39,575 nucleotides of DNA from Histomonas meleagridis 2922-C6/04-290x (taxonomy: Eukaryota > Protista > Parabasalia): contig JAANOX010000135.1 of assembly GCA_020184695.1 (NCBI GenBank), positions 1 to 39,575 of the forward strand. The letters are read 5' to 3'. Shown here one piece after another: positions 12,837-39,437 of this stretch (within the stretch, counting starts at the first letter, position 1; the number at the start of each line of letters is the position of its first letter). The notes beneath the pieces were generated by a model. It ran no database searches. It had not been told where the DNA came from and was given only the letters and a program-made list of their open reading frames with translations. A program made the position numbers and the translations under genes.

Positions 12837-12865
12837 ACAAAAATTTTTAAAATCATTATTTTTTT

Positions 12866-13348
12866 ATGATTAAAATAAGTGATTTATCACCCCATGTAGG
12901 GAAGGATAATCCTGAACATAATAGTTCTAGTGCTAATTGTAAAGTTATTATTATTAATAATAACAATAGTGAAACACCAGCACATTATCCTGAAGTTAAT
13001 GAAGAAACACCAAAAATAATTACAAGAGAAACTGAACTTAATACTGATAATGCAAGTGCTTTATATAAACATATAGCTTTAACATTTAGTGCAATATTAA
13101 AAACAAATAATATGAAATTAATAGCAAATTTAATTGATAATAGTGGAAAAATTATTATTAATGCTAATGATTTAGTACAAGCTATAAGTTTAATTTTAGA
13201 AATTGATTTTAATCAAGTTAGATTAAGTTATGAAGATCCTGAACCTGGATGTTTAAAACATGTAAATCCAATTAAAAAAGTTAACTCAATTAAGATTAAT
13301 GGTTATGATTTTAGTTCACAATATAATAAAGAAAAAAACATATTAATG
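12866..13348 (+). pseudogene. Near-identical copy of the 7053 gene, truncated by the MULE
   Basis: Homology ends at ATTAATG 13348; the ORF runs on into foreign sequence. Confidence 0.85.
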
Positions 13349-13976
13349 TATAAAGGGAACGTATTTTACATACGCACTTTTATACGCGCTTTTCGTAATA
13401 AACTATTCAAATACGCACTTTTTTGAATGCACGCCGATCTAACCGAAAAAATTCCAATTTTTTTGATTTTTTTTAAACTTCGAAAATCAAACTTAATGAT
13501 TTTCAATAAAATTAATATATAATATAGCTTATATAAAGTAATAAAATAATTTAATGTTAAATCTTCAAAAAATTAATTCTAAAATGAGATAAGATCAATT
13601 TAAAAAAATATTTTTATTTTAAAATTCCAATAACATTAATCGAATCTACACATTCAAAAACATATATATATATAATGTTTTTTTGGATTAAAATATCTTG
13701 TATTCATGGGAAGAAATGAAGATATTTTCCAAAAAAATTGAATTGTATTGAATTATTGAATGAGTATTCAATTCTTACGTGGAAAAACCGTAAATAAAAA
13801 CAACACATTCAAAAATTTGCCGTCCGATATTTAACTCAAAAGTGATTTTCTGTTCACAATAAAAATATTTCCATTAAAAAAATGATAAACAAATAATTTT
13901 TATTACTATTATATGAAGAAAGATCAATCATTATTGACTATATCAGAGTTTTATTAATTTTATTAAATTAAATTTT

Positions 13977-14488
13977 TAATTCTCATCAAGCCACTTTTTT
14001 TTTTTTTTTTGAAATGAAAAAATTAAAAAAAATAATTTCGTTCACAATTTTCAATTCAATTTAAAATTGCAAAAATTTTATTGTTTATATAGAAAGTGCC
14101 TCTGAAATTTCCATACCAGCTCTTCTCATGTCTACTGAAAATAATGTGCAAAACTATTAATGTAAGCTAGTAACGTACAACATTTCATATTCTGATTCTT
14201 TTTAAATATAATGAATGCAACCATTTTGTCATGAGTAATAGGAAATGGTTCTTCGTGTATTAGATTTATCATCACTTTGGCATAAGCATGAATCAGCCTA
14301 TCATATGTACTTTTCGTTCCTGCTGAAACATTTGCGGCTGATATTGTATCAGCTTCAGCAAGTAATTGCTCCATCAATGACATTTTTAAATATGATTCAT
14401 AAAAAAAAAACTTAAAAACAATATTGAAAATTGTGAGCGAAATTACTTTTTTTAATTTTTTCATTTCAAAAAGTGTCGATGAGAATTA
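13977..14488. mobile_element. ~510-bp cassette with ~66-79-bp inverted repeats, inside the MULE
   Basis: 13977-14055 (TAATTCTCATC...CACAATTTTCAAT) inverted at 14423-14488; no TSD identified. Confidence 0.65.
14132..14383 (-). pseudogene. Tyrosine-recombinase N-terminal (SAM-like core-binding) fragment, Crypton/DIRS-like
   Basis: AGTKSTYDRLIHAY...PFPITHDKMVAFI...CTLLAYINSFAHYF matches the helical YR N-domain pattern; no catalytic domain follows. Confidence 0.5.
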
Positions 14489-14491
14489 CAC

Positions 14492-14556
14492 ATAATAAAG
14501 GCAACTTTTTAAGACGATGACCAAAGTTCTTCGTCTTAAAAAGTTGCCTTTATTAT
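14492..14556. repeat. Perfect 26-bp palindrome with 13-nt spacer
   Basis: ATAATAAAGGCAACTTTTTAAGACGA / TCGTCTTAAAAAGTTGCCTTTATTAT. Confidence 0.95.
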
Positions 14557-14599
14557 TTGTGAAATATCAATTAGATTGCATTCAAAATTTAGTTGATGA

Positions 14600-14930
14600 T
14601 TATTAAAACATTATATGCTAATTTATGCATTTACTCATCATTAATTATTTTATTCATTCATTATTATTTATCATAATGTATTTTGAATATTTATCATTCA
14701 TCATTATATATTATTGATCATTTATTGTTATATTTATTTATGAATAACATTATGCATTACATTAATGAATAACATTATACATTATATTATACGATATATT
14801 ATACATTACATTAATAATGAATAACAATATTCGTTACACTAATGAATAACATTATACAATATATTAATGAATGAAAATATAAATAACATCATACATTTCA
14901 TTATATATATATATATATATATATATATTA
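14600..14930. repeat. AT-rich degenerate tandem repeats (AATGAATAACATTATAC-like) ending in (TA)n
   Basis: Visible reiteration; inverted copy at 24530-24850. Confidence 0.75.
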
Positions 14931-15335
14931 ATTCAAATTAAAATTAATTTTCATTGATTTGTGAAGTTTAACATAATGAAATATTATATCACATTTTAGC
15001 ATATCAAATATTTATATATAAAAATTAAGAGATAAAAAATAACTTCTATCTCATATATTGGATATATATATAGATTTTATTAATTGTTTTGAAATTAAAA
15101 TAATAAAAAGAATTATAATAGCGATGGCTTGTTTATAAATTTTTCAAAAATATTATATATTCATTGAGAAAAATGAACAAAATTTTCGAATTTTTTTACT
15201 TAAATACTAACACTTTTAAATATTTTATTTGTTATGCCACAATTGATATATACCCTATTATTGAACGATCATTTTTAACACAAATACAATTTTTTGTGAA
15301 CATAACAGTCAAAAAGTGCCCAAACTTCACATTTT

Positions 15336-16170
15336 ATGAATTTGTGGCCTGATCGCCATTCTTCTCGTCAACAATGGACTCCAAGTCTTATTACTCATGA
15401 TGGTTATCAATACCGATATGATTTTCAATGCTTTACTCCAATGGATCAATGAATCAACACCAAAAGGTTTATATTATAAATACAGTTTCACAAGAAAAAA
15501 TTAGAAATTATATTCACCATTTAAATAAAATAGCTCAAGGAAATATAATTTCAATTGAAAAATCTTTAACATTAAGTAATGAGCGATTTGTATTATTTCA
15601 ACTCCGAAATGATAAGAAGCCAATAATAAGAAGCAACATATATTTATGCATTCCAAGCTTTTAAAAATAGTTTACAAAGATTCGGTAACGGTTTCAATGC
15701 GGACGTTAAGTCAATCTGCGATTTTGAAGCAGCAGAAATCAATGCAATTATAGAAGTTTTTATTACAAAATCAAATTCATTACAATTATGTTACTTTCAT
15801 CACACTTAGACAATTCGGAGGAAAGCTCAAAAAATTTATCGGAAATAATATCAATAATAATTCATTCCATAATTTAATTAAAACAATTAATATTTTATCA
15901 AGAATTCCGAAAAAAAGTGCCGTCAAATTAATTGAATTTTTACCTGAAATTGAATGCATTGATGGAAGCATGCAGTAGTTTATTAAATATTTCATTAAAA
16001 CTATTTATAGAAAATATTCTATCGATTATTGGAATTCTGAAGGCAAACCCAGAAGTGACATTCTGACAAATAATATCAACGAAAGTTTCAATAGAAAAAT
16101 CAGTAATTCAATTGGGAAAAATTCAAATATCTCACAATTTTGCACAATCATTCAAAAACTGGAAAATTAA
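15336..16170 (+). pseudogene. MULE transposase remnant
   Basis: LITHDGYQYRY, SICDFEAAEINAIIEVF, CYFHHT*TIRR, LTNNINESFNRKI; first catalytic D region absent; stops and frameshifts. Confidence 0.85.
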
Positions 16171-17612: not shown

Positions 17613-18199
17613 AAAATTCATTGAAATTTGTTATGAATATATTCGATAATCAAAAATTTTCATCTTGAACTGAAATGTTGGGATTTTTTATCTCCACGTA
17701 ATGAATGTGTAACAATTGTTTGCTGACTGAAATGATCAGCTATCATTGTCAACAATCCAAAAAAAATGATTTTTGCGCCAATTAAATAATTTGCACAAAA
17801 ACTTCATTGAATATCGACGTTATCAAAATGACATATTGTCAAAATTTGGTTTTTACCGGGTAAATATTCGATATGAACAAAACAAAAAGTTCTATCGGTT
17901 TACTGTGCTGCAGAACACTGTTCTATAACAAGACATCCATAAAAAAATATAATATAAGATAAGATAAGATAAGAAATAAAAAAATAAGAAAAGATATTAG
18001 AAAAAGGAAAGCCTGGGAAAATAAGGGAGTGCTTGGGTGGGGAAAAGAATAAAAAATTTGGAAAATATGTGTAAAAAAAAAATCAAGAATAGGAAAATTC
18101 CAAATAAAAATATATCAATAAAAAATACATAATTCCCATTTCGAATTATCGAAAAATTACAGAATATTTTCATTATATGTGAAATATATTATTTGATGT

Positions 18200-18486
18200 A
18201 TAAAACAATGTGTAATATTGTTCATATTGTCATTCATTAGTGTATTGCATTATGTCATTAATTTATGTATTGTATAATGTCATTAATTAATACATTGTAT
18301 AATGTTATTAATCGATGTATTGTATCATGTTATCAATTAATGTATTGTATAATGTTATTAATTAATGTATTGTATAATGTTATTCATATTGTTATTAATT
18401 AATGCATTGTATAATGTCATTAATTGATGTATTGTTTAATGTTATTCATATAGTTATTCATCTATGTATTGTATAATGTATTGTAT
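18200..18486. repeat. Degenerate tandem repeat (TGTATTGTATAATGTTATTAAT-like)
   Basis: About 20-22-nt reiterated units. Confidence 0.8.
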
Positions 18487-18556
18487 AAGCTTGGAATGCA
18501 TAAATATATGTTGCTTCCTATTATCGGCTTTTTATCATTTCCGAGTTGAAATAATA
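18487..18556 (-). mobile_element. Distal piece of inverted MULE copy B (split by the mariner insertion)
   Basis: Reverse complement of ~15593-15662. Confidence 0.9.
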
Positions 18557-19502: not shown

Positions 19503-20410
19503 TATGGTGATAATATTATTACACTTCGAACAGTTCAGAAATGGACAAAAAAGATGAATGAACATACCTTCTCAATTTTCGAACAGAAAAAAATAGGGAG
19601 ATTAAGAAGATCAGATTTAGATCAAAGAATAACCAGTTTTATATTAAGTTATCCATATGCATCGACGAAGAAAATTGCGAAGAATGTAGGCGCAGATCCA
19701 AAAACAGTGAAAAATATAATGATTAATATTTTAGGGATGAAAAAAGTTAACTTCGAATGGATCCCACATAAGTTGACTCCAGAAATTAAAGCCAAAAGAG
19801 CTGCCATTGCTTCTGAATTATTTGAATTCCTTTCTAGTTCAAATGACTACAGACTAAGACACATATTGACGCAAGATGAAACCTGGATTTATTTTGTTAA
19901 CGGGAGAAACTCGATGTGGATTGAATCTGGAGTGCAAAAACCATACAAACCCAAACAAACTATTGCCTCCAAAAAAATAATGATATCTGTTATATGGTAT
20001 ATAACTGGTATCAAATCAATAACAATGCTCCCGATAGGCCAAAAATTTAATCGAATTTTATTTTCTGAAGTTGTACTTGGAGATTTGGCAAAAAGAATTT
20101 CAACGAAGGGATATTTTTTGCATATGGATGACGCCCGGCCTCATTTGGTTCATGAAAAATTGAATGAATTGGGGATTAAAAGACTTCCGCAACCCACGTT
20201 TTCGCCAGACCTCGCACCTTCTGACTTTTTTCTGTTCGGATATCTAAAAAAATGCTCGAAGGTGAGGAGTTTGAAAATGAAGATCAACTTTTTCAAAAGG
20301 TTGAAACATTACTGTATAATATTCCTAAAGACACCTTCAGAGCCGTATATAATGAATGGATGAACAGACTTTTAATTACAATTGAAACTCAAGGTGAATA
20401 CATATCATAA
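19503..20410 (+). pseudogene. Mariner transposase B, 5'-truncated, frameshift near 20250
   Basis: WIPHKLT, ILTQDETW, LHMDDARPH, PTFSPDLAPSDFFLFGYLK. Confidence 0.92.
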
Positions 20411-21007: not shown

Positions 21008-23444
21008 TTGCCCACGATAGAACAAATTCAGAATGATAACGGTTTTGGTGGTTTTGACATTATGGTCATGTGTCAGCCTGAAAAAATTCTAATTCGGTAT
21101 CTCCTAAACAATTTCGTTCCAGATTGGAATATCTACGAAGACGAGATCAAGATCAAGATTGAATTCCTTTATTTTCATATCCTAAAACAGCAAATTACAT
21201 TTAATCATTTATCACAAATTTTTGTTTTTATGGGTTTAGATCTTAGGCAAACAAATGAAATTCTTGATTGTGCATTGAATAGTCCAGGCCTTCTTGTCCC
21301 AACTGTGAAAAATTCTTGGTCAAAAGAAGAAAAACTCTTGCTTGTGACATGTTGGGTGAAATTTGGTTGCTTTGACAAGGTTTGTTCGATTCTTCCATGG
21401 CAACCATGTGAAGGTTGCAGAAAGGAGCTGTTCAGAATCAGAGATTTATATAAAACGAAACAAAAATTCGAAAATAAAATTATTACGCGAGAAATCGCAA
21501 ATAATGAAATAATTGACAAGTCTCCTTTAATTTTTGTTTCAAATAACGATGAAAAAACAAACAATGATAATTTTGACCATAGCAAAAATATTTCAAAACA
21601 GCTTTTTATATGAAATAATATCAGAAATAGAAGGAAATTAAAAGGACAGCAACTTATTTATGCACGTAAGATCAAAACTTTGAAAACATGCTCCAACATT
21701 AACGAGAAAAAATTGCGGGAAAACAAATTCATTTTTCTAAATGAATTTGATGATATCTTGAATGAAGCTGAAAAGAATTTCAGGAAAAATAATGGCAAAA
21801 GGTATTCACAATCTAGCAAGGCATTTTGGGTCAGACTCATGATGTACAGCAGAAAATCGTTCGCGATGATGAAAGAATATCTAAATGGACCGAGTCAAAG
21901 TACTGTTGATCGATGGGTTAATAATAAGAAAAGCATTCCAAAATGGAATAATTCAGAAAGTTTAGATCAAGTTGATAATATAATTCAATTTTGGGCCAAT
22001 AGGCTTCAACTTTCGAGTGATGAGTTCTATACAATCAGTATTGATGTTGCAAAAGTAGACGAAAATTTAACAATAACTTCGGATGGAGAAGTTAGAGTAA
22101 CAATTGAACAAATTAGTCTTCCAAGGGAACCAATAGAGTACAAAGAAGATCGTGAATTATATTGCAATCTTTGGAATGAGTTATTAGATCGAATAATGAT
22201 TGTTACTCATATCTTCGTCATATTAATATGTCCATTGTCACCAAAAAGGTCTTTTCCTATTTATATAAAATTTTCCAACTCCAGATCTGCTACAGCATAT
22301 ATCAGAAATGATCTTGATTATATTATCAATCACTTAAAAGAAAAAGGAATGAAGATAAAATTTATTGGAAGTGATGGGGATAAATGCTATAGAAACAATT
22401 TCGACAAGCAATATAAAAGAATTACATCATTATGGAATAATAACATAATAAATCTTGATGAAATTTCAAGCGAAGAAGTGATGTATTCAAATGATGCATA
22501 TCATTGCTTAAAACGCCTAAGAAAAGCAATGATAAATAACAAAAGTTTATATCTCAAACCAGATTATATAAATTCATCTCATTGTGTTTCTCAAAATACA
22601 CTTCAGCAGATTGACAAAACGTTTTGTCCAAATCTGGAAATTATTCAGTAATTCTTTATTTATGGGTTGGTGTATTGGCTAGAAGTGTGATGGCAAGCAA
22701 GCATCTTACAAGGTTTAAAATATGTCAAATGTGTTATATTGGCTTATTTATTGTGGTCTTTTATAAAATGTTCTTAGATGTATGGAAAAAGGATCCAAAA
22801 ACAAAATTTTCAATTTCCAAAATGATTTTGAGTCCCATCTTATGCATTGATTACGCAAATTTCTTTTCATGCATGATCAAAGCATTAACATCAATACCTG
22901 ACACATTTCCTTTATCTCGTGTTGGATCAATTTTATCTGAACATTTCTTTGGGAGAATAAGAAGAAATGCCGAAAATTGTCAAACAATGGATTCTATTAG
23001 GTCAGCCATTAATAAGATACAATTTATTGATACATATCGAAAAGACACTAACTTTGATGATGCAAATCATAGAAGGAGGCTAGAATCCGCTCTACTACTG
23101 TAGTAGAATCAGGAATTATTTCATTTGACAATGATGAAATTTTGAAATGCAGAGATTTTGTAAAAAGTTTGTTTCATCAGGTTCAACTTTTAAGATTATT
23201 TGACACCGAAATATATAGGTTTTTGATGAAACCAATATATTCCGATATTAATTCTTTGGAAAAAGAATTATCTGAGAAAGAAAATAGTAATGAATTAACT
23301 GAAACCAAGAAACATTGGACGCTTAATGCTGCACAGTTTCGTGTGAATGGAAGATATGGTAGAAATATCAAAAATAGATATGCTACTTCCGCAAAACCCT
23401 TTCAATATATTAATTCATCCCATCCAGATAGCTTTTATGCTTGA
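21008..23444 (+). pseudogene. P-superfamily (THAP9/Galileo-like) DDE transposase with N-terminal Myb/SANT-like domain
   Basis: RYSQSSKAFWVRLMMYSRKSFAMMKEYLNGPSQSTVDRW, ISIDVAKV, GSDGD, DAYHCLKRLRK, SEHFFGRIRR; ORFs 21008 and 21680 are in frame across a single TGA; WSKEEKLLL...KFG...LP. Confidence 0.75.
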
Positions 23445-23871: not shown

Positions 23872-26026
23872 TACAAATCGCTCATTACTTAATGTTAAAG
23901 ATTTTTCAATTGAAATTATATTTTCTTGAGCTATTTTATTTAAATGGTGAATATAATTTCTAATTTTTTCTTGTGAAACTGTATTTATAATATAAACCTT
24001 TTGGTGTTGATTCATTGATCCATTGGAGTAAAGCATTGAAAATCATATCGGTATTGATAACCATCATGAGTAATAAGACTTGGAGTCCATTGTTGACGAG
24101 AAGAATGGCGATCAGGCCACAAATTCATAAAATGTGAAGTTTGGGCACTTTTTGACTGTTATGTTCACAAAAAATTGTATTTGTGTTAAAAATGATCGTT
24201 CAATAATAGGGTATATATCAATTGTGGCATAACAAATAAAATATTTAAAAGTGTTAGTATTTAAGTAAAAATTCGAAAATTTTGTTCATTTTTCTCAATG
24301 AATATATAATATTTTTGAAAAATTTATAAACAAGCCATCGCTATTATAATTCTTTTTATTATTTTAATTTCAAAACAATTAATAAAATCTATATATATAT
24401 CCAATATATGAGATAGAAGTTATTTTTTATCTCTTAATTTTTATATATAAATATTTGATATGCTAAAATGTGATATAATATTTCATTATGTTAAACTTCA
24501 CAAATCAATGAAAATTAATTTTAATTTGAATTAATATATATATATATATATATATATATAATGAAATGTATGATGTTATTTATATTTTCATTCATTAATA
24601 TATTGTATAATGTTATTCATTAGTGTAACGAATATTGTTATTCATTATTAATGTAATGTATAATATATCGTATAATATAATGTATAATGTTATTCATTAA
24701 TGTAATGCATAATGTTATTCATAAATAAATATAACAATAAATGATCAATAATATATAATGATGAATGATAAATATTCAAAATACATTATGATAAATAATA
24801 ATGAATGAATAAAATAATTAATGATGAGTAAATGCATAAATTAGCATATAATGTTTTAATAATCATCAACTAAATTTTTGAATGCAATCTAATTGATATT
24901 TCACAAATAATAAAGGCAACTTTTTATTTCTTTTAACTTTGGTCATCGTCTTAAAAAGTTGCCTTTATTATGTGTAATTCTCATCGACACTTTTTGAAAA
25001 AAAAAAAAAAAAAAAAGTAATTTCGCTCACAATTTTCAATATTGTTTTTTTAATATGAATCATATTTAAAATGTCATTGATGGAGCAATTACTTGCTGAA
25101 GCTGATACAATATCAGCCGCAAATGTTTCAGCAGGAACGAAAAGTACATATGATAGGCTGATTCATGCTTATGCCAAAGTGATGATAAATCTAATACACG
25201 AAGAACCATTTCCTATTACTCATGACAAAATGGTTGCATTCATTATATTTAAAAAAAGAATCAGAATATGAAATGTTGTACGTTACTAGCTTACATTAAT
25301 AGTTTTGCACATTATTTTCAGTAGACATGAGAAGAGCTGGTATGGAAATTTCAGAGGCACTTTCTATATAAACAATAAAATTTTTGCAATTTTAAATTGA
25401 ATTGAAAATTGTGAACGAAATTATTTTTTTTAATTTTTTCATTTCAAAAAGTGGCTTGATGAGAATTAAAAATTTAATTTAATAAAATTAATAAAACTCT
25501 GATATAGTCAATAATTATAGATATTTATTCATATAATAGTAATAAAATTATTTGTTTATCATTTTTAATGGAAATATTTTTATTTTAAACAGAAAATCAC
25601 TTTTGAGTTAAATATCGTATGTCAAATTTTTTTGAATGTGTTGTTTTTATTTACGGTTTTTCCACGTAAGAATTGAATACTCATTCAATAATTCAATACA
25701 ATTCAATTTTTTTGGAAAATATCTTCATTTCTTCCCATGAATACAAGATATTTTAATCCAAAAAAACATTATATATATATATGTTTTTGAATGTGTAGAT
25801 TCGATTAATGTTATTGGAATTTTAAAATAAAAATATTTTTTTAAATTGATCTTATCTCATTTTAGAATTAATTTTTTTAAGATTTAACATTAAATTATTT
25901 TATTACTTTATATAAGCTATATTATATATTAATTTTATCGAAAATCATTAAGTTTGATTTTCGAAGTTTAAAAAAATTCAAAAAAATTGGAATTTTTTTC
26001 GGTTAGATCGGCGTGCATTCAAAAAA
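23872..26026 (-). mobile_element. Inverted MULE copy B (main part)
   Basis: Near-identical reverse complement of 13419-15592, including the YR cassette (25071-25324) and the palindrome (24907-24971). Confidence 0.92.
25071..25324 (+). pseudogene. Second copy of the tyrosine-recombinase N-terminal fragment
   Basis: Same sequence as 14132-14383, with a frameshift in an A-run. Confidence 0.5.
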
Positions 26027-26249
26027 TTGAAATTATTAATGTAAAGTATTGTAAATTGAATATGTCATAGCTTAAAAATCTATTTTCTCACTAGGGTAAC
26101 AGAATCTTGACTGGAGGTACCACTAACGTCCTTCGCAAGATGGGACCCAGTGGAAAATGATTTTTTTAATTGTTAACGGTATATTTATAAATAACGACAT
26201 GATGAGCGCTCATCTATTCAATTAGATGTTAATTATGTGTTAAAAGTGG

Positions 26250-26278
26250 CACGGTAGTTGACATAGTAAACTACGGTG
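26250..26278. other. Stem-loop (10-bp stem, 1 mismatch, 9-nt loop GACATAGTA); candidate degenerate origin
   Basis: CACGGTAGTT / AACTACGGTG; loop is not the canonical TAGTATTAC. Confidence 0.45.
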
Positions 26279-26340
26279 GTAATGCCCCACCCCCTCAAAC
26301 ATTAAATATTTATTTACTTCTTCGGGTCCCATAAAAACTA

Positions 26341-26413
26341 CCCGAGTAAGGACCTTCGCATAGCGAAGTGAAAAATATTTGTTATACTCCACTTCGTTAT
26401 GTATATACTCGGG
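26341..26413. other. Larger interrupted stem-loop in the intergenic region
   Basis: CCCGAGTA/TACTCGGG plus CATAGCGAAGTG/CACTTCGTTATG. Confidence 0.7.
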
Positions 26414-26539
26414 AGATAGGAAATTTTTTTGTGCTAATTGTTAACGTATTTATTATGTGATAACTAATGACACTTTTTGATAAGCTATTCGATGTCGAGC
26501 CACATCTAATTCAGTGCTTTACATTTGTCATTTTAATCA

Positions 26540-26761
26540 ATGGAGAAGTAATACTTCGAGATAACAACAATAATAGAACATAAAGTACGATACAATTACA
26601 TAGAATCAAGAGATGTAGTATGGTTCAGAGTTCAGTGGGCAGTAGATAATACAACAGAATGGGTACGTTTTGAAGACTTAAATTGTGTACATTATCTAAA
26701 CCAATACGTTGCTCACCAAGTACCAGCTGGTAGTGTCCAAGAGTTAATGGAAGCAATCTAA
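26540..26761 (+). pseudogene. Stand-alone chromodomain-like protein (74 codons, TAA at codon 4)
   Basis: MEK*YFEITTIIEHKVRY...VVWFRVQWAVDNTTEWVRFEDLNCVHYLNQY; TCATTT upstream; absent from ORF track. Confidence 0.65.
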
Positions 26762-26794
26762 TTGAGTAAAAAGAATAATTCCAATTGGTATTTT

Positions 26795-27337
26795 ATATTG
26801 TAATGTTATGGCATAAGATATGAAAAATGAAACAGCACCTTGATTGCCTGCTTGAATATCAACTGTAGGACTAATTAATAAAGCAATACTATCATTAGCA
26901 CTGAGATTTTGCGACAATGGGTAAAGATACGTGAACCATTTCCTGGTTGTGATGTATCGTATATACCAGATGCCATGATAAAGTTGGGGGGACTGTAAAA
27001 TTGTCCAGTAGGATCAGATTCATTAGTACCAAAATTAAGATTACCTGGTAGTAGAATCAGCAGGAACAAAGACAATAGCCCATTCAAGTAAATTATACTC
27101 AGGAGCAGTACCTGATGCACCAGAACTATAACCAATGTTAAAAGTAATGTTTTTTACTTTACGCATACCTTGAACAGAAGTAGCAGGAACTATATAAATG
27201 TATTGAGTAGTACCAGCAGGAGCAGCAGTATTATTGTTCTCAGAGTAAGTCGTAAATGTAGAATACTTGTTGCGTCTACCAGGAAATAATTAACGTTGTG
27301 GATAGTTACCTATGTATCACCTTGTTTGACGTGGCAT
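26795..27337 (-). pseudogene. CRESS-virus capsid protein (kirkovirus / rodent stool-associated circular virus-like)
   Basis: MPR...RRNKYS, IVPATSVQGMRKVKNITF, WAIVFVP, FYSPPNFIMASG, RIFT(P)LS(R)NLSANDSIALL, SYAITLQ; 2 stops and 2 frameshifts; motifs recalled from this capsid family. Confidence 0.8.
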
Positions 27338-28439
27338 TAGAAAAAATAACCTGCGGGTGTCATAATTTTCACAGAATTGTCACATGTAAATTAACTAAGT
27401 ATGTTTGATATCTTAAAATCTCTATCGTCATTGAAAAAGTGAAATATGTATTGATATTGTTAATGCAAAGTATTGAAAATTGAATATGGATTAGCTTAGA
27501 AATATATTTTCATACAGACAAGTATTATATCTGAAATTAATAAAGAATTCGCTTATAATTCGTCATAAACTTTGGCTGTGTCAAAATTGAAAACAATTCA
27601 GAAGTCTAACGATCAAAAACAAACAAAAAAATCAGACTTTCAATGATTTACTGGTACAACCGCTGAGAAGCACGTTGGATACAAACTTCGAACTTTTTTT
27701 TTCATGGACTCTATATTTATTGGGGAGTGTGACTACTGTTCCTCTTTTGTTTTCCTATTTTGGCGGTTATTTTCACGATCAATAAGTTTTATGGTTAACG
27801 ATAATTCGTGACGTCCAAAACCGATAGAATTTTAATGAATTTAACAACCGTTTATTCAATTTATAAAACGAAATATTAATATTTATTCATTAATCGTGTA
27901 TATTGAATATGATGATGAATACACCATTACGAAATTATATTTTGCTCTTGATTTAAATTCAATAAACCAATTTAAAAATATAATCATTTAAAATGATTAT
28001 GTATATCAATTGCTATTAAACTTCAGTTCAAATTCGAAAATAGTCGTGCTCTTATATATCTGAATTCTTCCCTATTAAAAATAAGTTGTTTTGCCCCTCA
28101 TGAATACTAATGAACAATACTAATCAAGGAGAATCCTCTCCTTAATGTTTTTTGGATTAATAATGATCATCCAAGGCTCAAATAGAAATTAACCAATATC
28201 CACGAATGAAAGAAGGAGCAATGTTTTAATATCACTTGATGTAATGCAATGATATAAAAAACATATTGTTATACTAGAAAAATTAAGTTTGAATGATATG
28301 GAATGATGACAACGTTGGTGCTAGAACTCCTATTGAACTCATTGGCCGTGCCACATGCTTTGCTATGCTTAAGTTGCTGATAAAAACTTTAATTTAGATA
28401 CAGAAAATGATTAAATCACATCATTTAGAAGATATCAAT

Positions 28440-31290: not shown

Positions 31291-31627
31291 AATTTTGTAA
31301 AACATTTAATTTATTTACATAAGCATTATATTTATTAAAATCATCATTAAATATTTGATTCAATAATTCCATTTTAGATATTTGATAAGCTTGATCTAAT
31401 TGTTCAGGTGTTATATATTGTAAAGGATTCTTTATAGTAGGATGATATTTTTCATCTATAAATTTATAAATTTGTTTTCTTAATAAATTATGATATTTAT
31501 TATATACAGTTACAGTTAATGTTATTACATTTTTATTTTTAACGATAGAAAATGAAGGTTTAATATTTATAGCAGTAAAATCACAATCTTTAAACTCTTG
31601 AGCGAAGCATGTATAAAGAGATTCCAT
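31291..31627 (-). pseudogene. 3'-truncated copy of the 4295-4666 gene
   Basis: Near-identical up to NVLQN, then foreign sequence. Confidence 0.8.
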
Positions 31628-31666
31628 TAATAATAATGAATTGATTTTATAAAATTATTTTATTTT

Positions 31667-32467
31667 ATGGAAAACGATATTAATATTGATGCCTTAGATA
31701 ATATGATTGATTATTGTTAATATAAAAATAAACCTAAATTAAATGAAGAATTAATAATTGAAATTCATCCAGAAGTAAATGTACCTTATAATTCTTTAAA
31801 TATAGCAGTAGGTAGACAAAGAAGTGGGAAAACTCAATGTATAATTAGAGAAATTATTAAAATTAGTAATATTAGTCCTAGAACTCATTTATTAATTTAT
31901 ATTAATAAAAATGGATTAGAAAATGATCCTACATTTGAATCATTAAAACCTTTAATAAAGATTCCAATATTATATGTAGCTGAAAATCAAGCAGAAGATA
32001 TCGTTAAAGATATATTAAAATGGATACAATTTTATAATGAAATTAAAAATAATCATTGGGAAAATAAAATAGTAGATAATCAAATATCTGAATTATTTGA
32101 AAAATTATCATTTAATAATTTTAATAATTTAACTTTACATACTATAATATTTTTTGAAGATTGTGCTAATAGTCCTTTATTTATAAAACCTACTAATTAT
32201 TTTAATCAATTATTTACTAAATTAGCTCATATTCAATGTTCTGTATTTTTCGCTGTACAATTTTGGAAATCTTTACCTGCTGAAGTTAAAGCTAATGTAA
32301 GTACTATATTTATATTTCCTAATTTCTCTAAACAACAATTAAGTTATATGTTAGCTCAAATACCATTGCCTTATACTAAAGATCAAATTTATTCAGTTTA
32401 TCAAAAACTGTCAGGACATCAAAAAATGATCGTCGACGTGAATAATCAAAAAATAAAAATTGAATAA
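31667..32467 (+). pseudogene. Packaging ATPase, copy 3 (267 codons, one TAA at codon 18, no frameshift)
   Basis: AVGRQRSGKT, IIFFEDCANS, LAHIQCSVFFAVQ; missed by the ORF track. Confidence 0.88.
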
Positions 32468-32498
32468 AAAATGATAAATTAAAATTCATATTTTTTTA

Positions 32499-33972
32499 AT
32501 GTTAAAAGGCCAACAGGGTATAGATAATGAAATAGCTACTTATCTCAATGTTCTTGGTATTGATATGACTGCTGCTAAAGAAAACTTAAAACAATGGAGA
32601 AATAATCAATCCAATAAAACTATAAATGATCTCAATAATCAAATAAAAATATGGCGAACATTAAAAACAACCAATATAGATGAGAATACTTTATGGGACA
32701 ATATATTGACGTATTTACAAAATATTCAACATCCGTTTTTTGAGGATCTAGCCGCATTTCATCCAGAAGTACAAAAGGATGATGCTTTGGAAGAAACAGA
32801 ATATGAAGATCATTTTTCATCAGTGCAGCCAACAGTAACTATCGAAGACATTAAACCAATTTTGTCTAACGAAATTTCACCATTGGGTTATGAAAAAATG
32901 GTTGGAAAATATCAAAAAAAAAGAACAAATACTAAAGGTTTACCACCACCTTTAAGACCTCATGAATATCACATTAGAACTCCTGATGGTAAAATGTATG
33001 ATTTTATAGAAGATAAATCAAAATATAAATATACTGGAGGAAGTAATGTTATATTGGATGAAAATATGGATACATTAGCACATCTTATTCTTGATTTAAA
33101 GAAAGATGTTAAAAAAATTAGAGAGCTTCAAACAATAGAAGGAGCAAGAGCATTAGTTGAAAAACACATAATAAAGATAAAAAGGATCCAAGATATCATT
33201 GGACTGCAATTGAAGAAGATATAAATAAGGATGGTATTCCAGATGTTATAGTTGCAGATCAACATAAAAGAGCAAAATTTGTAAATGGATGGACAGTTAA
33301 ACAACATGACCCCTATGAAGCACAATATATAAGATTTTTACAAAAAAGTTATGGTAGTCCACAAAATAGAAAACTTTTGAGAGCAAAAGGTCAACATATA
33401 GAGGATTTCGATGAATTTATGGATAAATATATAAGAAAAGTTTCATATGATGATAATAAGCCATTTGATGATCCTAGGGTAGAACCTACCCCAGAAGGTA
33501 GACAAATTATGGATACTGTTGATAAATTTAATTTAAAGTATTATCAAGATACAGGTGTTAGAGATGTTTATAAAACACACAAACCAAGAAGGAGAACAGC
33601 AAATCAAGTGTTTACTAGATATGTTATTAAGCCAATTTATAATGATTATCTTAAAGATTATCAAAAGAATAATGCTAATGATGAACAACTTCCTGTAAAG
33701 TTAGCTATGATTAAAGGAATGTTTTCAATACTTAGTGTATCTGCTAAATTTTATAATGACATTATATAAAAACAAGAATGAATAAGATATTGGCAGGTCA
33801 AAATATTAAAAATGAGAAAACAGCTAAGAAATATATTAGAGAAGATACAGGAGGAAATTATTGGACAAGCGCTTCAAAGCAAGCAGTTTCTGAGATTTTA
33901 CTAGATAAGAATAAATTTGCAGATGTTAAAACATCATTATATGGATATATTAACAGTAATCGTGGTTTCTAA
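32499..33972 (+). pseudogene. Copy of the 5545-7014 gene
   Basis: Track ORFs 32499, 33377 and 33778 are near-identical to copy 1. Confidence 0.8.
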
Positions 33973-34010
33973 ATAAAGAAAATTTTTTTTTTTAAAATCA
34001 TTATTTTTTT

Positions 34011-34517
34011 ATGATTAAAATAAGTGATTTCTCACCTCATTTAGGGAAGAATAATACTGAACATAATAGTTCTAGTGCTAATTGTAAAGTTATTATTATT
34101 AATAATAACAATAGTGAAAAACCAGCACATTATCCTGAAGTTAATGAAGAAACACCAAAAATAATTACAAGAGAAACTGAACTTAATACTGATAATGCTA
34201 GTGCTTTATATAAACATATAGCTTTAACATTTAGTGCGATATTAAAAACAAATAATATGAAATTAATAGCAAATTTAATTGATAATAGTGGTAAAATTAT
34301 AATTAATGCTAATGATTTAGTACAAGCTATAAGTTTAATTTTAGAAATTGATTTTAATCAAGTTAGATTAAGTTATGAAGATCCTGAACCTGGATGTTTA
34401 AAACATGTAAATCCAATTAAAAAAGTTAACTCAATTAAGATTAATGGCTATGATTTTAGTTCTTAATATAATAAAAAATATAACACATTAATGGATGAAT
34501 TCAATATTTCCTTATAA
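34011..34517 (+). pseudogene. Copy of the 7053 gene (CAA>TAA at 34464)
   Basis: Native end DEFNISL* at 34517. Confidence 0.8.
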
Positions 34518-34523
34518 AAGGAT

Positions 34524-35378
34524 TCATTTATAAGTATCATAATTTTCATACCAGTCATTAGTATCAGGATTACCATGCCAATACCGAATTTCGTCAGTAG
34601 GTTTAATATTACCCCATCCTGAATGGAATATTTCATCTTCTTCTTTTGAAGGTATATTAATTGCATTTGGAACTGGATTTAATAAATATCTTAGTACTGA
34701 TATTTTTATTCCTTTATATTATGTATATTAAATTTACCTTTTTCGTAATTATCTACTATATAAATATCTGGTAATATTTTTTGATCTCTTTTTTAATTGA
34801 TCTGTGTTATAAACTGTTACTGATGTACCAGGAGGTAAATTAAATCCTTTTTGTTTCATAATTTTATGATTTAATTCATGTAAAGGTAAATCAATAGATT
34901 TTTGTTTTATTTTTGCTTCATATGGTAATATTTTTTTATGATTTAATTTAGATAATGTTTTATGATAAGTATAATTATAATTATGTATAATTTTATTCAT
35001 ATCATAAGGTTAAATACACTCTAAACCCATATTATCAGCCATATCTCTAATAGTTCTACAAATTCTATTAATTATAGCTAAAGATTGATGTATAGGATAA
35101 GATTTATTTTTAATTATTATTCTCTCAACAGGAATTATTTTAGTACCAATTAAATAATTTGATATATATTGTAAACGTTTTGCCCAAAAATGTATTTTCT
35201 GAATCACAATAAATAATTTTGGGATTAAATAAACCTGTACTATAAAGTTCAAATAAAGCTTTAGCTACACTTTCGATTGATTTTTTACTATGTTTATCGT
35301 TCATTTTAATATTAGTGATAGTACCTAATAAATATCTAGTTTGTACTTCTACAGCTAATAAATTACAATAATCATAAT
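34524..35378 (-). pseudogene. Integrase, copy 3 (3' part; divergent from copy 1)
   Basis: YCNLLAVEVQTRYL, IIYCDSE, SLAIINRICRTIRD; retains a C-terminal tail that copy 1 lacks. Confidence 0.8.
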
Positions 35379-36242
35379 TAAATTCATACATATTAGATTT
35401 ACATGAAAGTACAGTTAAACCTGTACAATATAAAGAAACATTCTCAGTTGCAGTATCAATAGTATGATTAGTTTCAGTATCACATTTAAATGTAGTAGTT
35501 ATATTAGCAGAATTACCAATTTGAGTAAAACCATGAGTAAATAAAGGTAAATTATTAAATGTAGCATTAATAGTAGAATCTTCTAAAAATTCTATAACTT
35601 ATTTAATTTTACGTGGATCTACTTGACACCAAATTAAACCATTTTGTTTAACATAAAACTTTAATTCAATATCACCAACTAATCTATTTGAATATAAATC
35701 AAATGCTTGTAAAGCTAATATATCTTCAAATGGAAGATTCATTTCAAATTCGATATCATGTTTATTTCCATCTGCAATTGTATTTAAATCAACATAAGTA
35801 CCACAAACAGATTGATAATATTCTTAAACATTTTCATATAAAGAATGTGTATATTTCCTAGTTTTCTTTTCAGCATAGGGTTTAATTGTTGAATAACAAT
35901 AACCTTCTCGACAACATTCATTTTGTTGATAACCAGTAGAAATATTATTAGACATAATTTGTAATTGATCTAATAATTGATTAGAACTCTTAAAACCTAT
36001 ACATATTTTAACTAAATTTTCTGGATCTGACAAATTACCAGATGAAATAGCTTTTGATAATTGTATAGTTATTCTAATTTTAAAATTAATAAAACCTTCA
36101 GTTATTTGTGAAATCATATGATCACCATGAGTAATTCTTAATCTAGTTTCTTAAGATTGATTAAATGGTGCATTTTGATCATGACAATCTTCAGTTCTTA
36201 AAATAAAAGAACGAGTACCATCATTTTTAGCAATTAAATCTT
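35379..36242 (-). pseudogene. 5'/central part of the major capsid gene, inverted and joined to the integrase
   Basis: Matches 2150-2700; adds NRLVGDIELKFYVKQNGLIWCQVDP...CKSNMY, which is missing in copy 1. Confidence 0.8.
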
Positions 36243-38672: not shown

Positions 38673-39437
38673 ATGCTCAGAATGTGCCCAAAATGTAACA
38701 GTGTTATGACATTTTATCCACATGAAAGATTCTACCGATGTCGGAATCGAAAATGCGATTGTCACCTTTCTATTTGGCATCCCACACCCAGAAACAATGG
38801 AAAAATTAATGACAATGAGTTCTTCCTTGTTTATGCTTGCTTCTGTATGGATTATCCAATTCATATAGCTGCATCAATAATAGTGATTAGTGATGATGCA
38901 TGTTCGCATTATTATCAGAAGTTCAGAGAACAAGCAGTACTAACAACCATTTATGAAATGAGTAATTTCCCCCTTGGCTCAATTGTCCAAGTTGATGAAT
39001 CGCTTTTCACCAAAAGAAAAGATAACAAAGGGAGGAAAGTTATGCCAAAATGGGTTTTTGGAGCATGCGAAGCTATTAAAGGAGGCAAATGCTACTTTAC
39101 CATTGTTCCTAAAAGAGATAAACTAAATCTAGAAAGATGTATAGGACAATGGGTAAACGTAGGCTCGACAGTGATTTCTGATCAATGGGAAGGTTATATT
39201 GATTTACAAAGAAAAGAATATTTCCATTTCATTGTAAATCATAGTAAGAATTTCGTTGATCCAATTATCAAAGTTCATACTCAAAGGATTGAATCAATGT
39301 GGAGTGCTGTAAAGCAATGGAAAAGAATTCATAAGTACAAAGATCGTAATTATTTAGAAGATCACATTTATGAATTTTGCTATCGCTATAATCACAAAAG
39401 TGATATACTTAGTTTCATGAGGAATTTATATCAATAA
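38673..39437 (+). CDS. Merlin (IS1595/ISXO2-like) DDE transposase with N-terminal zinc ribbon
   Basis: CPKC...CRNRKC, VQVDESLF, WVFG, VISDQWEGY, VNHSKNFVDP, HTQRIESMW; ORF uninterrupted. Confidence 0.92.
   Translation: MLRMCPKCNSVMTFYPHERFYRCRNRKCDCHLSIWHPTPRNNGKINDNEFFLVYACFCMDYPIHIAASIIVISDDACSHYYQKFREQAVLTTIYEMSNFPLGSIVQVDESLFTKRKDNKGRKVMPKWVFGACEAIKGGKCYFTIVPKRDKLNLERCIGQWVNVGSTVISDQWEGYIDLQRKEYFHFIVNHSKNFVDPIIKVHTQRIESMWSAVKQWKRIHKYKDRNYLEDHIYEFCYRYNHKSDILSFMRNLYQ

Follow-up and report, generated by a model that had tools for sequence, protein, structure and literature searches.

Circular single-stranded DNA (ssDNA) replicons that lack a gene for the replication initiator (Rep) and rely on a helper are well known in plants, where they include betasatellites and nanovirus segments. 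The betasatellites of begomoviruses (Tolecusatellitidae) are Rep-less circles of ~1.35 kb that depend on the Rep of their helper, carry a Rep-type stem-loop, and encode one small anti-silencing protein. To our knowledge, helper-reliant circles of this kind have hardly been described for the circular Rep-encoding ssDNA (CRESS) viruses of protists or those associated with the gut. Both sick livestock and human stool have repeatedly yielded kirkoviruses. Here we analyzed a 39,575-nt contig of the parabasalid Histomonas meleagridis 2922-C6/04-290x (JAANOX010000135.1; this whole stretch is called the window), in which an element bounded by direct repeats carries a broken kirkovirus-like capsid gene and a convergent, broken, chromodomain-like small gene. 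The element is most probably an endogenous copy, slightly over unit length, of a Rep-less circular ssDNA replicon of ~1.4 kb, that is, of a satellite or a segment belonging to the kirkovirus-like viruses of parabasalids.

Compared with betasatellites, which have no capsid gene and use the coat of the helper, live in plant hosts, and encode a βC1 protein that is not a chromodomain, the element thus has both a coat gene of its own and a different second gene. Nanoviridae DNA-S and other segments of multipartite ssDNA viruses are likewise small circles, with a jelly-roll coat of ~170 amino acids (aa) and a common stem-loop; however, nanovirus circles carry one gene each in one sense, and their master Rep circle is known, whereas two convergent genes are present here and no partner Rep circle was found. 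Capsid-only circles of 738 to 902 nt from fecal viromes share the capsid family and the lack of Rep and differ in having no second gene.

Parabasalids have been predicted to be hosts of kirkoviruses, and 104 Rep-like and 41 Cap-like insertions have been counted in H. meleagridis (Kinsella et al. 2022, PMC9615429). Insertions of this sort are therefore already known, and the window copy may be among those 41 Cap-like elements. The link between kirkovirus-like viruses and parabasalid hosts, which a preliminary description of the locus had also stated, is borne out by the same source. Its passages on these elements deal with the same host and virus lineage as here and count Rep-like and Cap-like matches; those passages make no mention of a Rep-less circle of unit length, of its origin, or of a chromodomain gene. 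No description of a class of capsid-plus-chromodomain circles was found in the literature searched, and no paper containing both "chromodomain" and CRESS terms was retrieved by full-text search within the limited set of texts covered.

Repeats and broken genes of the integrated element

The direct repeats that the preliminary description had placed 1424 bp apart around the gene pair are confirmed as two 62-nt copies with 85% identity (self-BLAST E value, 4e-13), and no third copy was detected by self-BLAST in the window. They enclose an island with a G+C content of 34%, versus 20 to 21% in the 2 kb to its left, in a window that is A+T-rich (26.6% G+C overall) and rich in repeats. Both the small gene and the capsid gene are broken, the direct repeats have diverged by 15%, and host repeats occupy the left flank, so that the element is host flanked and decayed as endogenous viral elements are. 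With both genes broken and the origin hairpin decayed, the window copy is dead. Its left repeat copy begins exactly at the end of a 2.2-kb host repeat, and the original redundancy may therefore have been longer; beyond that host repeat, no DNA or capsid-profile similarity elsewhere in the window points to a further part of a longer tandem copy. Neither an Rfam nor a tRNA scan gave any match in the window. The features of the locus are listed in Table 1.

The capsid gene has suffered two in-frame stops and two frameshifts and has lost its normal stop, its frame overrunning the point at which the relatives end. It was read from 27337 to 26744 as three stop-free pieces in two frames, which were searched separately. 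The largest piece has 15 matches among 1.84 billion representative proteins (phmmer), the best being a hypothetical protein of H. meleagridis (KAH0796076.1; E value, 2e-20). Most of these matches are proteins of 95 to 222 aa with an arginine-rich start, although two long proteins (615 and 4,292 aa) are included with weak similarity in multiple stretches. The name "Capsid protein, Raccoon dog stool-Circo-like virus" is attached to one cluster member, whose gene lies on a contig of 3,975 nt. A profile of the intact relatives matches all three pieces (E values of 9e-23, 3e-7, and 4e-5), which jointly cover it nearly completely, while single stop-free pieces of the capsid gene and of the small gene have no meaningful match in Pfam or PDB sequence searches. 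P0002, the closest intact relative, is modeled by AlphaFold as a jelly roll (pLDDT, 67). The model resembles bromovirus, geminivirus, nanovirus, and circovirus coats in the PDB (E values down to 6.5e-6), with the coat of faba bean necrotic stunt virus among the structural matches (target-normalized TM, 0.61), and CRESS capsids in BFVD (E values down to 1.9e-11), including that of an Entamoeba-associated CRESS virus. The profile that matches the window pieces also matches capsids whose genes adjoin Viral_Rep and SF3 helicase genes on contigs of 3.1 to 3.9 kb. The capsid is thus homologous to those of Rep-encoding members, and the earlier assignment of a kirkovirus-like capsid to the minus strand stands.

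The small open reading frame (ORF) has ~70 codons, with one in-frame stop downstream of the likely ATG. Its family is best judged from intact members, and a profile (A6) was built from six of them, four encoded by free circles (see below) and two being 74-aa proteins of H. meleagridis (P0029 and P0030); the window ORF was excluded. When A6 was searched against the PDB, chromodomain proteins made up the majority of the 50 matches listed, including the cpSRP43 chromodomains (E value, 1.2e-5), HP1 (2.5e-4), CBX1/3/5, Rhino, CDY, and MPP8, with E values of 1.2e-5 to 1e-3 for cpSRP43, HP1, CBX1/5, and Rhino. Two intact members match nearly the whole of the Pfam Chromo model (PF00385) at subthreshold scores of 13.7 and 13.1 bits. 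The AlphaFold model of the host-genome member P0029 (pLDDT, 86.8) consists of three strands followed by a C-terminal helix, and its top 50 Foldseek matches in the PDB are all chromodomains, with a probability of mostly 1.0 (0.87 to 1.00) and a target-normalized TM of mostly 0.5 to 0.8. By profile and by structural model, the intact small proteins are predicted to be chromodomains, with the first (F/Y) and second (W) positions of the aromatic cage kept. A word-index protein search with the small protein of the L003 circle gave no candidate, and a back-translated search of IMG/VR with the chromodomain alignment gave no relative.

The window ORF itself matches A6 weakly but specifically (hhalign E value, 9e-4; probability, 23%; 37 core columns), and in an unfiltered HMM search it ranks second among the 755 ORFs of the window (E value, 0.034), below only the copy at 3384–3608. 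We tentatively accept it as a decayed member of the family, mainly from its position and orientation together with the weak profile match; this assignment is the weakest step in the chain.

Table 1. Features of the endogenous element and of its left neighbor (strand: +, plus; -, minus;., none assigned)
Feature	Position	Strand	Remarks
Whole integrated element	26026..27511	- (capsid-sense strand)	1424-nt unit plus 62-nt terminal redundancy; direct repeat, G+C island, circle-like genes and size
Left copy of 62-nt direct repeat	26026..26087	.	On the minus strand directly 3' of the origin-like motif, at the position of the iteron-like region of intact relatives
Right copy of 62-nt direct repeat	27450..27511	.	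Outer end of the element
Origin-like nested hairpin, decayed	26088..26150	-	Motif TTCTGTTAC (plus-strand 26096-26104) at the 3' edge of the loop; homologous to L060 9795-9855
Non-coding block	26203..26252	.	Conserved with the second H. meleagridis insertion, L060 (88% over 51 nt)
Two hairpins	26322..26401	.	Between the 5' end of the small gene and the origin-like element; z = -3.5 on the plus strand
Small chromodomain-like gene (putative), broken	26540..26761	+	Convergent with the capsid gene; position and size as in circles; hhalign match, HMM rank
Kirkovirus-type single-jelly-roll capsid gene, broken	26744..27337	-	phmmer and profile matches; jelly-roll fold of intact relative P0002
2.2-kb host repeat (neighbor, outside the element)	23872..26029	.	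End abuts the left direct repeat; inverted copy at 13416-15592, 97% identical

Free circles without Rep and a common origin design

With the capsid alignment as the query, IMG/VR and metagenome contigs yielded 53 loci, and look-ups of single proteins added more. The relatives fall into three classes. Contigs of 3.1 to 3.9 kb encode ORF1, the capsid, and ORF3 on one strand and a gene with Viral_Rep and SF3 helicase domains on the other, which is the kirkovirus-type layout as given in a recent paper. Capsid-only circles or tandem arrays have a Rep-less unit of 738 to 902 nt with canonical TAGTATTAC or CAGTGTTAC stem-loops (L001, L017, L018, L019, L023, L028, and L067/L068), L001 consisting of 6.3 perfect copies of a 795-nt unit. 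Circles of the third class (1298, 1299, 1319, and 1390 nt) combine the capsid gene with a convergent gene of 68 to 75 codons starting with MEF(P/A)V, and no similarity to Rep was detected in them. The 1298-nt circle is a long-read unitig with a name ending in "c," by which assemblers usually mark circular unitigs; the 1299-nt circle has a 326-nt overlap, and those of 1319 and 1390 nt have terminal overlaps of 25 to 30 nt in four separate runs. Circles with the capsid and the chromodomain gene in the same convergent layout come from at least eight sequencing data sets (runs or assemblies).

The window element matches these 1.3- to 1.4-kb circles in layout, gene for gene, and in size class. Both genes are under purifying selection in the free circles; for the small gene, dN/dS among circles is 0.16 to 0.23 at a dS of ~1, and it is therefore functional there. 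The preliminary description had staked its reading on exogenous relatives joining the capsid and the chromodomain gene. The four circular contigs do so without a Rep gene, so that a lack of such linkage cannot be held against it, and together with the capsid-only circles they agree with its statement that some related circles are Rep-less. In one further locus (L015, 1–2103), the module of capsid gene, chromodomain gene, and origin is joined to a DNA_pol_B_2 gene whose product is 79% identical in amino acids to the L065 polymerase; this join could reflect a mini-circle inserted at the end of the polinton-like element, an insertion next to it in host DNA, or contig chimerism.

No Rep was detected in the window by tblastn with 12 Rep proteins of related genomes as queries (E ≤ 0.1), in agreement with the preliminary observation that a Rep with HUH endonuclease and SF3 helicase domains is lacking, which holds for the unit and for the whole window. 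The Rep that characterizes Cressdnaviricota and Kirkoviridae is thus not encoded by the window element and is found in the larger relatives. The Rep-encoding kirkovirus-like genomes (such as L042, L044, and L022) have the same capsid family (profile E values of 1e-30 to 1e-61), the same strand polarity of the origin relative to the capsid, the nested hairpin with T(A/G)TTAC, the TTTTGGAC-type repeats, and the second non-coding block; they differ in having Rep, ORF1, and ORF3 and no chromodomain gene, whereas the element described here is Rep-less, about one third of their size, and equipped with the putative chromodomain gene.

The origins of the Rep-encoding L042 and L044 consist of a long outer stem around a small inner hairpin with T(A/T)TATTAC at the 3' edge of the loop (z = -7.2 and -4.4), followed downstream by repeats containing TTTTGGAC. 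The same design is seen in the mini-circles L002, L003, L014, L015, and L069, whose stems differ in sequence but are self-complementary; L003 has the canonical TAGTATTAC, and in L002, L014, and L069 a TTTTGG(A/C)-type repeat lies within ~25 nt after the motif. The circles, the second H. meleagridis insertion (L060), the window copy, and the Rep-encoding genomes thus have in common a nested hairpin, T(A/G)TTAC, and then iteron-like repeats, the window motif being TTCTGTTAC in a weak fold. TAGTGGTAC in the inner loop was considered as an alternative nonanucleotide and dropped, since in a comparison with L003, L042, and L044 it is T(A/G)TTAC, at the 3' edge of the outer loop, that is conserved. 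L014 and L002 also have a non-coding block of 100 nt in common with 19 Rep-encoding loci. The circles are Rep-less and have cis elements like those of a Rep-encoding helper, as satellites do: origin design, TTTTGGAC-type repeats, and the 100-nt block. Away from the origin, the second conserved non-coding block occupies 1089–1185 in L014 and 2270–2369 in L042 and is present in 18 other Rep-encoding loci; L002, L014, and L015 contain an identical GC-stem hairpin in it. Of the two intergenic stem-loops in the preliminary description, the hairpins between the small gene and the origin-like element are real, while the origin-like element itself lies elsewhere and on the minus strand (Table 1).

The 62-nt repeat is the stretch immediately 3' of the origin motif. 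Its left copy follows the origin and its right copy leads to the capsid start, which is exactly the arrangement that circular permutation predicts; the likeness of the right copy to the left one begins ~7 nt past the point matching the TGTTACC motif. In L060, an unbroken series of origin, repeat region, and capsid start is colinear with the window across its unit junction (local alignment scores of 65 and 44, versus shuffle means of 21 to 25 with a standard deviation [SD] of 4). Since L060 reads across the junction, the two ends of the window element were joined in its source, which was circular or tandem. Circularity is seen in the relatives as overlaps, tandem units, and the "c"-tagged unitig, and from its terminal redundancy and the permuted second insertion, the source of the window copy was presumably circular as well.

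Competing explanations and a possible life cycle

The proposal of an integrated unit-length satellite or segment, made in the preliminary description, is supported by the repeat, the capsid homology, the Rep-less circles, and the shared origin, all of which fit a satellite and a segment alike. A true segment of a multipartite kirkovirus-like virus, its Rep encoded by another small circle with which it has a common region (as in nanoviruses or bipartite begomoviruses), rather than a satellite of a self-sufficient helper, is a possibility to be taken seriously, though we consider it somewhat unlikely. It would suit the several Rep-less size classes (738 to 902 nt with capsid only and 1.3 to 1.4 kb with capsid and chromodomain), all of which have Rep-type origins, and the purifying selection on the small gene across a deep divergence. 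However, neither 69 loci nor IMG/VR yielded a Rep-only circle with a matching origin, the metagenome scan having been made with the capsid, and an exact search of IMG/VR for the 25- to 27-nt stem-loop common to L002, L014, and L015 gave no match. The Rep-encoding relatives with the same origin design also have a capsid gene of their own and therefore look self-sufficient.

Given the many Rep-like and Cap-like insertions in H. meleagridis (PMC9615429) and the weak chromodomain likeness of the window ORF, the locus might instead be a full-length kirkovirus insertion that lost Rep by deletion, with the 62-nt repeat as a later local duplication and the small ORF as a chance or host sequence. This is very improbable: full-length relatives consist of ORF1, capsid, and ORF3 with Rep opposite and have no chromodomain gene, while the window layout is that of the 1.3- to 1.4-kb circles gene for gene, and the repeat copies stand where circular permutation predicts them, with L060 bridging the junction. 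Antisense ORFs of 73 to 85 codons that follow the capsid gene in full-length genomes were considered as chromodomain candidates and rejected; they are of low complexity and have no profile match. Nor is it probable that the small gene belongs to the host, or to polinton/Maverick-like elements of the host, and lies beside a capsid insertion by accident. A closer member of its family does occur at 3384–3608, away from any kirkovirus-type capsid and behind the major capsid protein (MCP)-like gene of a multi-copy polinton-like element. The preliminary description had regarded the occurrence of the chromodomain ORF and the repeats at host loci without the capsid as damaging, and this gene answers to that in part, yet the interpretation is not overturned by it. 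The free circles from at least eight data sets carry the capsid and chromodomain genes in one convergent layout, and metagenomic relatives of the polinton-like element are without the chromodomain gene, which argues for gene flow between elements and not for a host gene. An assembly artifact, in which episomal viral reads were merged into a host contig, comes to mind since the window is the whole of a repeat-rich contig of 39.6 kb, but it is hardly credible: the genes are decayed, the repeats have diverged by 15%, the G+C content has drifted toward the host value, the flanking host repeats recur elsewhere at 97% identity, and the published assemblies are described as combining long and short reads.

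Against the interpretation as a copy of a Rep-less kirkovirus-like circle with a chromodomain gene, several observations have to be set. No match literally named kirkovirus was returned for the capsid, so that the label is indirect. The window ORF alone has no chromodomain match in Pfam or the PDB; of the convergent plus-strand chromodomain ORF in the preliminary description, the ORF, its orientation, and the chromodomain character predicted for its intact family stand, and recognition of the window copy by itself does not. Even the intact members (13.1 to 13.7 bits) stay below the PF00385 gathering cutoff of 25.1, and their third cage aromatic position falls in a 3-residue gap relative to HP1 (HMMER alignment); with aromatics at just two of three cage positions, methyl-lysine reading is uncertain. 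The window origin hairpin folds no better than shuffled sequences (z = -0.96) and is recognized by homology with L060, not by energy. Similarity between the non-coding DNA of the window and that of the exogenous circles is weak, with L002 ~3 SD above shuffles and L014 and L069 not above them, and the colinearity argument therefore rests on L060 and short shared motifs. Because the host repeat ends just where the element begins on its left, the true extent of the redundancy is not fixed by the sequence, and no helper or partner Rep genome was tied to any given circle.

If the element is indeed an endogenous satellite or segment, its free form would encode a kirkovirus-like jelly-roll capsid of 165 to 190 aa and, on the opposite strand, a stand-alone chromodomain protein of ~70 aa, and would carry a kirkovirus-type origin. 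Such a circle would be replicated in trans by a rolling-circle mechanism, with Rep supplied by a co-infecting kirkovirus-like genome or by a partner circle that encodes it, and would be packaged in its own coat. The chromodomain protein may act in the host nucleus on chromatin or on a viral minichromosome, where its possible roles are tethering of the double-stranded replicative form or interference with the heterochromatin-type silencing of that form. Chromoviruses use the chromodomain of their Ty3/gypsy integrases to address chromatin. The predicted fold of the small protein is the same as in chromovirus and HP1/Polycomb chromodomains, but the protein is free-standing (68 to 75 aa), without fusion to an integrase, and the third cage aromatic is missing. 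As the outer end of the element lies within ~10 nt of the predicted nick site, the window copy may possibly have arisen by integration of a linear rolling-circle product.

The polinton-like element and implications for Histomonas

The window also contains a polinton/Maverick-like multi-copy element (1–8634), which is 96% identical to L063 and 90% identical to L061. In it, the second chromodomain-like gene (3384–3608, plus strand) lies directly downstream of an MCP-like gene (2056–3271, plus strand); it is 98% identical to P0029 of H. meleagridis (74 aa) and has one in-frame stop here, while its paralogue P0030 follows an intact, 349-aa version of the MCP-like gene at L061. The MCP-like protein has 495 metagenome relatives with 69 to 77% identity, mostly of 539 aa (loci L064 and L065; proteins P0033–P0150), single sequences of which are found on up to 438 contigs and at least one locus of which comes from a human gut metagenome assembly. 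The metagenomic relatives of the element combine the 539-aa MCP with a protein-primed B-family polymerase, and no chromodomain gene was detected in them. The family would seem to be a polinton-like virus or element, abundant and hosted by a gut parabasalid. The chromodomain-like gene is thus common to two unrelated kinds of virus-like element in one host lineage.

Much of the contig consists of inverted and direct duplications with 96 to 97% identity (13416–15592 and 23872–26029; 4330–7576 and 31291–34531; 2150–2702 and 35683–36242), and one duplication is present in three copies (7031–7541, 12844–13354, and 33989–34499). Repeats of the window are 88 to 97% identical to those on H. meleagridis scaffolds, which fits this species, or a very close relative, as the host. 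Transposase-like ORFs include a mariner-type DDE fragment (19554–20363), a P-element-type HTH ORF (21680–22651), and an ISXO2/Merlin-type DDE ORF (38673–39437); the mariner-like stretch has a counterpart with 88 to 91% identity in H. meleagridis scaffold WSYJ01000030.1. One family of short, A+T-rich tandem arrays recurs at 14621–14741, 18184–18488, and 24529–24841 in the window and at 6851–7655 in L060.

For the kirkovirus-like viruses, the fossil copy in a Histomonas genome ties the class of free 1.3- to 1.4-kb circles to a host. The element also adds a predicted chromatin-reader fold to the CRESS gene repertoire, and the circles themselves are shown to keep a kirkovirus-type origin. Part of the kirkovirus signal in viromes may come from satellite-like circles of parabasalids, which would aid the reading of such data. 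It is tempting, if speculative, to assume a multi-component kirkovirus-like system of parabasalids in which Rep-less mini-circles bring their own coat and a chromodomain that tethers or shields the replicon and might favor its integration, the gene having moved between ssDNA circles and polinton/Maverick-like double-stranded DNA elements. Were this true, chromodomain-favored integration would help to explain the very high insertion load in Histomonas. The presence of a related chromodomain gene beside a polinton-like capsid gene in the same genome suggests that genes have passed between unrelated virus-like elements with one common host.

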